Positions 37,601 through 41,476 of a DNA stretch of 64,000 nucleotides are shown here, piece by piece; the stretch's first letter is position 1, and each line of letters begins with the position of its first letter. Where the stretch lies: positions 16,306,001 to 16,370,000 of the forward strand of contig CM119375.1 of NCBI GenBank assembly GCA_051294905.1. Reading direction: 5' to 3'. A program made the translations under genes and the position numbers. This stretch comes from Botryllus schlosseri. Its lineage: Eukaryota. Under the pieces are notes generated by a model. It was not told the origin of the DNA. It ran no database searches and saw only the letters and a program-made list of their open reading frames with translations.

Positions 37601-40600
37601 GAAGAATTTTTTAAACATAAGTAGCCTACCCTCCAGCTCAGGGATTGTGAGAAATCACTGTTAGTTGAAGTAAAGCCGTGAGTTTCTACTCGATTACAAG
37701 TAAAAGTGGCGATTTTCTAGACCTGTCAAAACTGTTGCCGCCAAATTTCACTCTGCAGTGATAGGATTCAAATTTGTTCCCAGCCGATTCTATCAAAAAG
37801 TCTAATTTTTCAACCTGTGAAGCTAACTGGTTCGCTGATCTCATAAAATTTCGTGAGACGCTTCTATAGAACCGGCGCTTCACACCGACGTATGGTAACC
37901 TAATCTAGTGGTGTTTGGGTCGTATTTAGGATACAAGCCAAAGCCAAAGAAATGCGAGAGAAACAAGAGCAACAAAGGAAATTAGAAGATTCGGCGCGAT
38001 TGAGGTTTGTTTTGAAATTTAATCAACTCGTCTTGAACTCACAACATGCTTATCTCAGATCAAATCAATCTGAGAAACAAGTCGAAGATCGTTTCCGAGC
38101 GCCGAGCGTGCCTATAACGGCGATGCAAAGGATGACGGTTGACACTAGAGTATGTATATTGATTCTAGAAAGGTGGACTTCACGATGATTAACGCTGGTA
38201 TTGCAATTAGGTCTCGTACACCGAAGCATCCGGGCGGCGATCGGTAGATCCGACCGCTATGCGTAACTCACAGTCATCCATTTTTGATTGGAACACAGCA
38301 AAGAGACCCACGTCGCCTGTGGATTATCAGCCAAGATCGCACAGGCAAAGAAAATCGGGTGTCTCTAAACATAAAGCTACCCCAGATTACAGCTCACTTC
38401 CGAGGTATGTGCGACATTGAAAATGCTGTAGATACCGCTTTCGTACCGGCTATGATGTAGTTTTCTATGTGAGATGCTTTCGTGAGGATGTGTTTTTTGG
38501 GTTGTTTATCGGGATGCGAGTGTCGTGTATGTGAGTGCCGCCTCGTGACGAACGTTTTGCTATTCTCAGAGGTTTTAAGTCTAGCAGCAAATCGAGACAT
38601 CGTCAACAACGCCAAGGTATGCTGAAACTGCTTCGGGCTCTTGTCTATGTCTTCGATGAAACCTTACTTCTGTTATGGAATGAACCTAACGCTAACACCC
38701 CCACCAGTCTGACACGTGGTCTTACGATTTTTCTGTGTTCGGTGTTAGAGTTTTCTTATGATTGGGTTAGCGGAGTGTTGACAATCAGTTACTGTGTTTG
38801 ATTGTTCACCAGTTCTAATAGCTGTAGAATATACATTGCTCGGACCTTGAACGGCTGTCAGGTTCTGGTTCCTGGCTTTGAAGGGGTTAGCATTTATTGA
38901 TATGCCTTGTCTGTCATCCAAAGTATAGACGTAGTCCCATAACATTTCTTGTTGCAATATTGCTGTCGTTTGAAGACATGTATGCCATGAGTTTGAAGCA
39001 TCTATGCCATATGTATTCCACTGGATGATTAATTGGCCAGAGTGTTGAGAGTGACATAGGCCATAAGTTATGATTCCCCTGCGAAGTTGCTGATAGGCTA
39101 TTTTGTATGTGGCACCGCGTAGGTCATTTGCTACTCGTAGGAATGCGATCTTTGCAAGAATGACTTTTGTTTCCTTACAAACGTCACTGCTATGTGGAAT
39201 GTGGCAAACAGTTATGGAAGATTGCACACTTTGTATTTCTCCCTATAATCATAGTTTTGCGATCAATGATTACTCCTTTCTTCCAAACCTTCGAGAATGT
39301 TTTACGGATTTCCGATTGTGATCATCAGACAAACTTTTTTTGCACAGAAAAGTAAATGGTCAATACATCCGCTACCGCGGTGTTATAAATCCATACAGGT
39401 ACGATGATCACTTGTAGTCTTGATCAGCATGCTGTAGTATCTTCACGCTACTTCATCCTTGTCTGCCGTTTCTTGACTCACTTCGAAACACTGTATGCAA
39501 AATCATCAAAAGTGTAATGATTCATTCATTCTCTCTTTTCAGAAAATTCCAATTTGATATGATTAACAAGTGTTACAATCATATTTATATTGTAGCCATC
39601 GAATACGTCTTGAAATTGTAGTGTTGTGACGAAGTTAGCTGTGCAGTGGCACAGCAGAGACATTTGTGTATCACTTCAGCAATTCCCCTTCTAAGTTATG
39701 TTGTTACATTCATGATTGCCAGGGTAATTGGATTGGAGTGCAGTATATGTGTTCCTTTCAGTTAGGGAAAAGATGTCAAAAGTAGAAGTTGTGTAAATCT
39801 ATACTTGATTACTAGTAGCTATAGATATTCCCAGGATATGTCAAAACTACTTGAAATGGAAGTAGTAAATGAGAGGTCTGAAAACTACCCAAGTACCGGT
39901 ATTTTCGAGAAGTACAATTGGCTGAGGTATCGCGTAATTTAAGAAGTCAATAGATGGCTGCTACTACAAATAGGTGCATTCTTTGAATATATATTCAGTT
40001 ATTCTGATAAAGTGACTACTGTAGACCTATGCGGTTTTTAAAACAACTTGAGTCGTAATACTAATGCAAATGTTCAAGTAAAAGGAGAAGTAGTCAAAAG
40101 ACGACCGCTTGTAAGTACGCAAAACCTGCTTGCGTACTCCAAAAAGTAGACGTACTCCATGGGAATATCCTAGAACTCATGGCACCCTATAATTTCAAGA
40201 CTTTCATGTCAGTTCCAAGTTGTGGTCTCCCAATAATTACTCCCTCTCTTGCCCATGGAGAAACGGAAGGGTTGGAAACACTAAAGTTAATGAATGTGTC
40301 CTCATATCATTCTTAAGTTGAATCTGCACGTCATTTTTTACCTCATCATTTGTTGTGGTCGGAATGGATTGTGCATCGTGTAAATTTACTATTGGACTTA
40401 CACCCGAATACTGTCTGCTGTATACTCACGGCAAGACTTGTAATCGCCATCGAGTGTTTTTCTAACCTAACCTAGCCTCGACTAGAACTTCACTCTACAA
40501 CACACGCCAGTACCATTCACGTTACCGATACCAACATGCATTCTGTCTGTTGCCTGTAGAATCCCAGCTCTGTGCACGGTTTGAATTTCTCCAGCTCGAA

Positions 40601-41476
40601 TGCGACAAGTGCATGCGTGAATCTTTGTCTGCTGCCTCATATTATGACGTTAACTAACCACACAGCGCGTTCGTTTTGTAATTCTCGATCTTCCAACCCA
40701 GAAAACCGGGCGCTGAGTCCAACGCCGGAGCGTTGCAGAACGATTCAGACGGAGTTATAGTGGAGAACGAGGAATCCGACTATTCTGATTGGAAATCCTC
40801 GTACATGCAGACGTCGCCGGGCAACGGAACGGATTTCGACAATTTAGAGTTTTATAACACGCAAAAGCCGCCGTCCGGACGCGAGAGTACATCACCGAAA
40901 CAAACCTCGGATTACGTGTCCAGACATGCGAACAATGCGACTAGAAAGGGCAGGTCTGACAGGCAAAAATCAGCAAGGGTTTTGAATCATAGCGTTTCTA
41001 CGCCGGCTCCATCGAACAGAAGTAAAACACCTCAACCATACCTTAGCAGGAGAGAAGACAGCCCACCGACACGTAGACGGTCGGATTATACTGCAAACGG
41101 CACTACTGATTTTTCGACTATCAAGAGAACATTTCAGCGCGAACAGAGTCCAGAGCCACCGCCCGTCGTAATGCGTAGGCCGAATCGTAGTAACAACCCA
41201 GCCCCGAGCGCGTACAGACACAGCATGCACGTAGACAACCCCGCGAGTCGTAGTTACGAACGCGGCCAAACATCACGAAATCAGAGGCCTTCTGTTATCA
41301 ACAACTACTGGAGAAAAACCAGATCGCAAACCCCAAACCATGACCACAGCGATAGCGACCAGGCCATCTCTCCCAGCGCCAGTACAGTGGAAATGAACCG
41401 CAACGCGGTGAAGAAGATTTACGACAGGACTCGTTACGGCGACAATATTGTAATATCGCAACCTTATAATTTGTAA
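11403..41476 (+). CDS. PARD3: Partitioning defective 3 (Par-3/Bazooka), whole gene span
   Basis: Phase-consistent exons: 11403-11519, 12168-12272, 13429-13651, 18013-18095, 19035-19433, 21794-21945, 22022-22150, 24604-24730, 25325-25433, 25494-25623, 26137-26272, 26330-26414, 26475-26581, 27504-27638, 27855-27969, [28598-29242], 29999-30091, 30292-30468, 31556-31756, 32112-32375, 33420-33694, 34861-34951, 36148-36262, 37354-37512, 37930-38004, 38059-38149, 38211-38404, [38570-38616], 40702-40760 or -41476. With all exons the model is 1545 aa (1330 aa without the 645-nt exon); 1768 aa if the 47-nt exon is skipped. Confidence 0.97.
13332..13364 (+). CDS. PARD3: Candidate alternative first coding exon of par-3 ([11 protein letters not shown])
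   Basis: ATG plus 11 codons, then AAG|gtgaat and a 64-nt intron to the exon-3 acceptor in phase 0; size fits the gene's short-intron class. Confidence 0.4.
13977..14601. mobile_element. hAT (Charlie-like) MITE
   Basis: CAGTGGTTCTCAA...TTGAGAACCACTG termini; flanks gccccgat/gcctagat (6/8). Related single ends at 18189, 30839 and about 55298. Confidence 0.8.
18013..22150 (+). CDS. PARD3: Par-3 exons 4-7: linker and PDZ1
   Basis: ...[14 protein letters not shown] / [42 protein letters not shown] / [20 protein letters not shown]; the 83-nt exon 4 supplies the required phase 1 to 0 change. Confidence 0.9.
19441..20728. mobile_element. Tc1/mariner-pogo type non-autonomous element
   Basis: 24-bp TIR CCGTAAACCGGGGTAAC(A/T)TTGGAC with one mismatch, TA on both sides, internal copies of GGGTAACTTTGGACA, and a C20A10 tract at 19783-19812. 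Confidence 0.88.
24604..26272 (+). CDS. PARD3: Par-3 exons 8-11: linker and PDZ2
   Basis: [17 protein letters not shown] / [43 protein letters not shown] / [11 protein letters not shown]...VKLVVSRH. Confidence 0.96.
26330..27969 (+). CDS. PARD3: Par-3 exons 12-15: PDZ3
   Basis: [11 protein letters not shown] / [36 protein letters not shown] / [15 protein letters not shown]...RGMIQ / MVIARRK. Confidence 0.96.
26657..27304. mobile_element. Foldback hAT-type MITE (long palindrome)
   Basis: About 300-bp near-identical inverted arms starting TAGGGCTCTTCAAAAATG; TSD gtgaacat/gtgaatat (7/8). Confidence 0.92.
28598..29242 (+). CDS. PARD3: Par-3 large 645-nt cassette exon (frame stays open to a stop at 29397)
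   Basis: Pyrimidine tract plus catgcag| acceptor in phase 1 and TCA G|gtatcc donor in phase 1, inside a 292-codon open frame; S/T/R-rich, no Par-3 homology recognised. Confidence 0.6.
29999..32375 (+). CDS. PARD3: Par-3 exons 17-20 including the aPKC-binding CR3 (30292-30468)
   Basis: [18 protein letters not shown] corresponds to FQREGFGRQSMSEKR; all four exons are phase 1-1. Confidence 0.88.
32512..33012. mobile_element. hAT MITE family A (GACTCGAGTC subterminal repeats), copy 1
   Basis: TIR CAGGGT(C/T)GTAA; colinear with copies at 42001 and 62231; no TSD recognisable. Confidence 0.85.
33420..36262 (+). CDS. PARD3: Par-3 exons 21-23: KSSSLESL site, RGRxxNESFRAA motif, basic region
   Basis: [20 protein letters not shown]...FPKAQPR / [20 protein letters not shown] / ...[16 protein letters not shown] second in-frame acceptor exists at 33549. 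Confidence 0.92.
33727..34195. mobile_element. Diverged relative of the 26657 foldback MITE
   Basis: TAGGGTT...AACCCTA termini, shared internal motifs (ACCGTAAATACTAT, ACTGGTTGGAATTGA), TSD ttgaggag/ttaaggag (7/8). Confidence 0.8.
37354..38404 (+). CDS. PARD3: Par-3 exons 24-27: coiled-coil region
   Basis: [15 protein letters not shown] / [16 protein letters not shown] matches the EQERIQAK coiled coil; intron 37513-37929 is GC-AG; introns of 54 and 61 nt follow. Confidence 0.88.
38570..38616 (+). CDS. PARD3: Par-3 47-nt frame-switching exon
   Basis: tattctcag|A GGT TTT AAG...CGC CAA G|gtatgc; good splice sites, phase 2 to 1. Confidence 0.7.
40702..41476 (+). CDS. PARD3: Par-3 terminal exon readable in two frames (stop at 40760 or 41476)
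   Basis: Acceptor ccaacccag|; phase-1 entry gives [19 protein letters not shown], phase-2 entry gives a 258-codon S/R/P-rich tail ending ISQPYNL*. Confidence 0.8.

Follow-up and report, generated by a model that had tools for sequence, protein, structure and literature searches.

Can a single short exon decide in which reading frame the last exon of a polarity gene is translated? The question is raised by par-3 of the ascidian Botryllus schlosseri, in a stretch of 64,000 nucleotides (nt) that we call the window (GenBank assembly GCA_051294905.1, contig CM119375.1, positions 16,306,001 to 16,370,000 of the forward strand; positions below are those of the window). Par-3 is a central scaffold of animal cell polarity; little is understood about its C-terminal region, which is generally regarded as a single disordered tail. 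An earlier note on this DNA had proposed that a 47-nt exon at 38570-38616 makes the last exon of par-3 dual-coding, with a long tail in one frame and a short end resembling a PDZ ligand in the other. Here, we report with high confidence a genuine and conserved splice switch, with selection for coding acting on each of the two frames. We further consider it probable that the 47-nt cassette acts as a frame switch for the terminal exon, exchanging the long tail for a QTEL end that serves as PDZ ligand.

Judged from its sequence, the gene on the + strand is par-3. The exon open reading frame (ORF) at 12150-12407 matches the Par-3 N-terminal domain (PF12053, 35.1 bits, cut-off 21), the fragment at 27483-27698 matches a PDZ domain (28.5 bits, above the cut-off of 23.2), and ORF 30249-30503 contains the aPKC-binding motif (CR3, of the FRQSxSEKR type), matching its Styela counterpart. 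The PDZ domains are split over exons, and a further fragment at 26057-26326 reaches 18 bits, below the cut-off, when scored exon by exon and not on the full spliced protein. In Pfam searches, the orthologue P0249 gave 108 bits to PF12053 and three PDZ stretches. A search for protein homologues with the PDZ2-3 region was dominated by MPDZ proteins and uninformative. Towards the 3' end, RNA contigs join the exons 37354-37512, 37930-38004, 38059-38149 and 38211-38404 into a chain that translates without a stop to PDYSSLP. Two bases are left over at its end, and thus the exon ending at 38404 is phase 2, as the earlier note had read it. This constitutive exon (38211-38404, +) ends with PDYSSLP plus AG (CCGAG|GT), its product is 57% identical to Par-3 of Styela clava, and the splice graph branches here. 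The intron 37513-37929, downstream of the coiled-coil exon, apparently has GC in place of GT as its donor (GC..AG), the placement that gives a clean frame.

Which paths leave this branch point? The evidence for splicing comes from Logan contigs of the runs X1, X3 and X8, each from a different study, covering the region 37300-43000. These runs are only guessed to be RNA, yet they carry GT..AG joints at introns throughout the stretch, so that spliced RNA is present. All three junctions named in the earlier note were found. The direct joint 38404>40702 is the commonest path in each study, with depths of 15.6 (X1), 5.4 (X3) and 46.8 (X8), and the joint into the 47-nt exon, 38404>38570, has depths of 6.6, 3.9 and 31.5 in the same order; the joint out of it, 38616>40702, was seen in run X8 at a depth of 28.4. 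Contig depth, a rough measure, puts inclusion of the 47-nt exon at ~30-35% of transcripts in each of the three studies. From the raw-read RNA run X23 ~6% was read, which gave a depth below 1 over the upstream exons and no junction reads, and all joints reported here derive from Logan contigs. Across the introns in 38405-40701, run X1 has a depth of ~10-14 compared with 32-47 on exons, which indicates a large share of pre-mRNA, or some DNA, in the libraries. If the 165-nt intron 38405-38569 were retained, the protein would stop after five codons (R-Y-V-R-H).

The two main paths read the last exon, whose acceptor AG lies at 40700-01, in different frames. If the cassette is skipped, the sequence continues with R and 257 further residues to the C-terminus ISQPYNL and the stop TAA at 41474-76; this disordered long-frame tail (40702-41476, +) of 258 codons, including the split R codon, is the one that the earlier note had described. 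The cassette itself (38570-38616, +; 47 nt, i.e. 3n+2) is flanked by AG and GT and encodes a basic 15-residue peptide starting GFKSS. Upon its inclusion, an E is formed across the junction and 18 residues follow up to QTEL, directly before the stop TAG at 40758-60. The 34-residue short end claimed earlier was correct in frame and in coordinates, as were all other coordinates and peptides of the note. The 59 bases at the start of the last exon (40702-40760, +) are dual-coding: the short frame ends there at its TAG and the long frame continues. The exon would be unremarkable on sequence alone, since a scan for splice sites and frame found 163 AG..GT segments in the intron that are of length 3n+2 and open in frame; it is the RNA that decides.

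Both stops lie in the terminal exon, as the note had stated. No joint leaves the last exon and the contigs run unbroken from 40700 to 41640-41798, and with both stops in the terminal exon no junction-dependent nonsense-mediated decay (NMD) is expected. We also considered the 47-nt exon as a poison cassette that triggers NMD and rejected it: such a cassette places a stop more than ~50-55 nt before the last junction, and the stop after inclusion lies in the terminal exon. The contigs end at 41798 (X1), 41744 (X3) and 41640 (X8), with a drop of depth there. We place the transcript end at ~41744-41798 and the 3' untranslated region (UTR) of the long isoform at 41477-41798 (+), while that of the short isoform starts at 40761. 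Neither AATAAA nor ATTAAA was found downstream of the long stop, and the poly(A) site is therefore placed only approximately. In run X23 the depth was 5-9 over 40929-41692, ~0.25 over 40738-40928 and below 1 on the upstream exons, a pattern that a 3'-biased library could produce, as could a shorter internal transcript.

Is the short frame conserved as a protein? For comparison, we used DNA of four relatives from the Logan assemblies L001, L002, L003/L004 and L005, while Styela and Phallusia were compared as proteins only. L001 contains just 708 nt upstream of the last exon, and cassettes were therefore not sought there. In L001, L002, L003 and L005, the short frame reads NR[AV][LT]SP, 8-10 variable residues and QT[EA]L before the stop, 18-20 codons in all. 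The stop is TAG or TGA at a conserved place, and the changes in length are whole codons. When the window is compared with L002 over the same bases, 14 of 18 residues are identical in the short frame and 9 of 19 in the long frame; the nucleotide differences fall 2, 5 and 10 times on the first, second and third codon positions of the short frame. The two conserved blocks behave alike, with 3, 5 and 11 variable columns of 12 each (third positions 11/12 against 8/24 for first and second together; Fisher p = 0.0013). Past the short stop, the periodicity reverts to the third positions of the long frame. Isoform X8 of Styela clava Par-3 (XP_039262124.1) continues from PDYSSLPR into GFKSGGKNKLNKTRK and then into D-NRALSPMREHYRTIQTEL. 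L002, a different species, has exactly the same 19-residue short tail, although the long tails of this pair are only 67% identical.

The cassette, too, has counterparts. In L003, the exon is again 47 nt long (8236-8282); it has an AG acceptor and an AAG|GTAGGT donor and encodes SFLSSAKLRQRKNRK. In L005, an RNA-derived contig, a 38-nt cassette (3n+2) is already spliced in and followed by a retained intron. All cassette homologues are 3n+2 in length (47, 47 and 38 nt in three other species), and the insert of Styela isoform X8 comprises 15 residues. These homologues came from a scan of splice sites and frame; tblastn with the 15-residue cassette peptide gave nothing convincing.

What could the short end do? 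Class I C-terminal PDZ-binding motifs have the form x-S/T-x-hydrophobic-COOH, and the short end fits this pattern, as the earlier note had recognized, with T at position -2 and L at position 0 directly followed by the TAG. In five other ascidian sequences the stop likewise stands directly after the motif. Over the six sequences, which include the window and Styela isoform X8, the end is QTEL in five and QTAL in one, and it is here that the short tail is most strongly conserved. A complex prediction of Styela PDZ3 with the short tail scored 0.34, compared with 0.01 for the best control, and lends weak support: 51 of 78 solved complexes and 2 of 108 mismatches reach this level, passes at or below 0.60 are more often wrong than right, and the method is not validated on peptides. 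Contact agreement between the runs was at least 64% and the predicted local distance difference test value (pLDDT) of the partner at least 43. The modelled peptide comprised 30 residues from 40668-40757, the last 19 real and the first 11 intron-encoded filler. Taken together, motif and model tip us slightly towards the view that the QTEL end would work as a class I PDZ ligand. In vertebrates, the third PDZ domain of ParD3 binds the C-terminal motifs of Daple and of GIV-L, the long isoform of Girdin/CCDC88A (PMC8042451); there, Par-3 is the receptor, whereas here it would itself bear the motif.

Several points weigh against a frame switch towards a PDZ ligand. The PDZ test is weak, as it pairs two species and uses a peptide with 11 filler residues. 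The short isoform carries a 3' UTR of ~1 kb, which could lower its stability. On the RNA side, the isoform shares derive from the k-mer depth of contigs, a poor measure, and run X23 is too thin for junction reads; the runs are RNA by guess, though their spliced joints show RNA content, and the intron depth of ~12-14 in run X1 points to pre-mRNA or DNA in the library as well. Finally, no non-tunicate example was found: a T-x-L end occurs in 0 of 117 vertebrate PARD3 isoforms, and other phyla were not searched.

The strongest competing explanation, which we regard as unlikely but deserving of attention, accepts that the short isoform is translated and selected, and ascribes its value to something other than a PDZ ligand: to the removal of the tail, to a polybasic insert that binds membrane lipids or directs the protein to the nucleus, or to the serine-proline site in NRALSP, with T-x-L being kept for another reason. 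Indeed, all four species have a basic cassette, NR[AV][LT]SP is as conserved as the terminus, and basic lipid-binding motifs are known in the C-terminal region of Par-3/Baz; the weak outcome of the PDZ prediction likewise suits this explanation. It accounts poorly, however, for the last four residues, which are the best conserved and stand directly before the stop. The terminus is kept at the stop despite the whole-codon changes in length, which matches the need of a C-terminal ligand and not a pure loss-of-tail model. Even so, both the polybasic insert and the invariant NRALSP site may serve separate functions.

Far less probable is a regulatory explanation, in which transcripts that include the 47-nt exon are unproductive and serve as a valve for par-3 dosage, with the conservation reflecting splicing enhancers or RNA structure. 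The conserved stretch does adjoin the 3' splice site, a usual place for exonic enhancers, and the included form does have a long 3' UTR. But the exon-junction rule of NMD is inapplicable to a stop in the terminal exon, and the substitutions follow a three-base periodicity in the register of the short frame. The whole-codon length differences, the kept position of a TAG or TGA stop, amino acids that are identical between species with differing DNA and the preserved character of the cassette peptide also speak against it. The pattern as a whole fits a translated peptide, and a splicing enhancer alone would not give it.

The long frame is likewise coding. A phmmer search with the long tail against 1.84 billion representative proteins found five relatives, one of them a 1725-residue protein, isoform X7 of Styela clava Par-3, with the tail at its very C-terminus; Par-3 of Phallusia mammillata also has the tail, and no Pfam domain matched within it. 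An alignment (A1) of seven ascidian tails, with the homologues P0001-P0005 and P0009, shows QKP, RE-SPEPPP, RHS--D-P and the terminal S-x-P-Y-N-L to be invariant. The long frame is weakly conserved inside the overlap and strongly downstream of it, where the nucleotide differences concentrate on the third codon positions of this frame (for example 60/45/123 when L001 is compared with the window). From these substitution patterns, we conclude that purifying selection acts on the shared segment in each of its two frames. The note's expectation that the long frame is coding and not UTR was thus confirmed, as was the conservation of both frames in relatives, with the long frame found in seven and the short frame in six ascidian sequences including the window. 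The idea of a non-coding long frame (3' UTR only), with the short form as the sole true C-terminus, has nothing in its favour beyond the existence of the short form. It is refuted by the predominance of the skip junction in all three studies, by the 264-codon open frame kept to the final PYNL with third-position periodicity in seven sequences, by its annotation as coding in Styela and Phallusia and by its continuation of the vertebrate YSSLPR|Q path.

The YSSLPR|Q boundary is shared with vertebrate PARD3, which marks the long path as the canonical one; the vertebrate tail ends in NRLQTPEKGRPFYS. The note had given this human terminus correctly and had compared it with the short frame. That likeness was unsupported: the vertebrate terminus lies in the long-tail path and has no T-x-L end, and the likeness in TPE, absent from the short tails of L003 and L005, is read as chance. 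The terminal S-x-P-Y-N-L of the long tail (41456-41473 in the window) fits a class II-like PDZ pattern, in line with the note. In the seven ascidian sequences this terminus stands in place of the vertebrate R-P-F-Y-S; judging by these residues, the two may share a conserved C-terminal motif.

Between the 47-nt cassette and the last exon, we found a second optional exon of 51 nt (39348-39398, +), which is in frame. The earlier note had no further exon between 38616 and 40702; its scheme was incomplete in this point. The second cassette is entered from 38404 (38404>39348, depth 3.2 in run X3 and 12.6 in run X8) and from the 47-nt exon (38616>39348, 9.4) and left towards the last exon (39398>40702, 20.4), both of the latter in run X8. 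The flows in this run balance: 31.5 + 12.6 + 46.8 (~91) leave 38404 and 46.8 + 28.4 + 20.4 (~96) enter 40702, with ~22 entering and ~20 leaving the 51-nt exon. Four paths result. Skipping of both exons gives the long tail, inclusion of the 47-nt exon alone the short QTEL tail, and inclusion of the 51-nt exon alone an extended long tail with 17 extra residues (16 and then R) ahead of it. With both exons, the product ends in RQQRQEK at a TAA (39352-54) located 44 nt before the last junction, a third terminus; at this distance the stop falls short of the ~50-55 nt that a poison exon calls for. The 51-nt cassette and this third terminus are newly found here. Homologues of the 51-nt exon are present in L005 (661-711) and L003 (8835-8885), and all end in ..PY with CAG|GTA. 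When preceded by the frame-switch cassette, the exon stops early in the window and in L005 and stays open in L003; the product of double inclusion is thus not consistently conserved.

How would the switch operate? In the proposed mechanism, skipping of the 47-nt exon would lead the terminal exon to be read in the frame of the canonical, ~258-residue disordered tail with its S-x-P-Y-N-L end. Inclusion would add a 15-residue polybasic stretch and shift the reading of the first 57 nt of the terminal exon one base out of register, so that the protein would lose the long tail and finish in a 19-residue end with the conserved NRALSP and Q-T-E-L. The 51-nt cassette would add 17 residues to the long form and, together with the 47-nt exon, impose the early stop (QEK). 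We infer that both proteins are made. The switch would then swap one C-terminal docking end, together with the motifs of the long tail, for another, and the partner of QTEL could be one of the PDZ domains of Par-3 itself or another polarity scaffold. As the note proposed, the swap may also affect self-association or condensate behaviour. We speculate, and consider it rather improbable, that QTEL binds one of Par-3's own PDZ domains, either in cis or across molecules, which would provide isoform-dependent self-association or auto-inhibition beside the N-terminal oligomerisation domain. If so, the ratio of the 47-nt exon forms would tune Par-3 clustering by tissue or stage, and the invariant PYNL would be a competing ligand of another class.

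Is such a tail swap without precedent? Cassettes that shift the frame and thereby exchange tails with and without a PDZ ligand are already known elsewhere. At splice site C (a/b) of PMCA/ATP2B, an optional exon of non-3n length shifts the C-terminal frame, giving two unrelated tails of which only one ends in the class I ligand E-T-S-L/V. There, however, the ligand belongs to the form that skips the exon, the calmodulin regulation also changes, and the family is unrelated. In GluN1 (C2/C2'), splicing near the 3' end changes the frame or the stop and yields, in place of the other tail, a short one with a T/S-x-V PDZ ligand; this case differs in using an alternative site inside the last exon and not an upstream cassette, and concerns a membrane receptor and not a scaffold. 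Within the family, vertebrate PARD3 has multiple splice isoforms, but its alternative ends (SPVDR, MPEKR, GRPFYS) stem from early termination or belong to the canonical tail, and no frame-switch cassette after YSSLPR was seen in these models. The closest counterpart is Styela clava isoform X8, which has the same architecture, with a basic 15-residue insert starting GFKS and the end D-NRALSP...RTIQTEL, and stands beside isoforms X1-X7 and X9 with the long PYNL tail. It comes from another ascidian order or family, has a different cassette sequence and is a computed NCBI model only. Our literature search turned up no account of a Par-3 isoform, whether ascidian or other, that ends in a PDZ ligand; the short form of Par-3 already existed as this unremarked Styela model.

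Ascidians thus keep two mutually exclusive C-termini of Par-3, chosen by a tiny exon, and the overlap is a clean natural case of a segment selected in two frames. If the short form is a PDZ ligand, Par-3 would be both ligand and PDZ receptor, which offers a testable route to isoform-specific clustering or choice of partner; ascidian embryos, with their centrosome-attracting body and the lumen formation of the notochord, are suited to testing it. For annotation, gene models with the long form only miss a conserved product.

Two further features of the window lie outside par-3. Just past the end of its transcript, 41884-42456 contains a high-copy repeat with a summed contig depth in the thousands in the RNA runs, many loose ends and non-splice joints, and is probably a transcribed dispersed repeat. 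Further downstream, a 442-codon open frame at 60457-61782 (+) carries integrase zinc-binding and core domains (PF17921, PF00665) and represents a retroelement remnant or copy.

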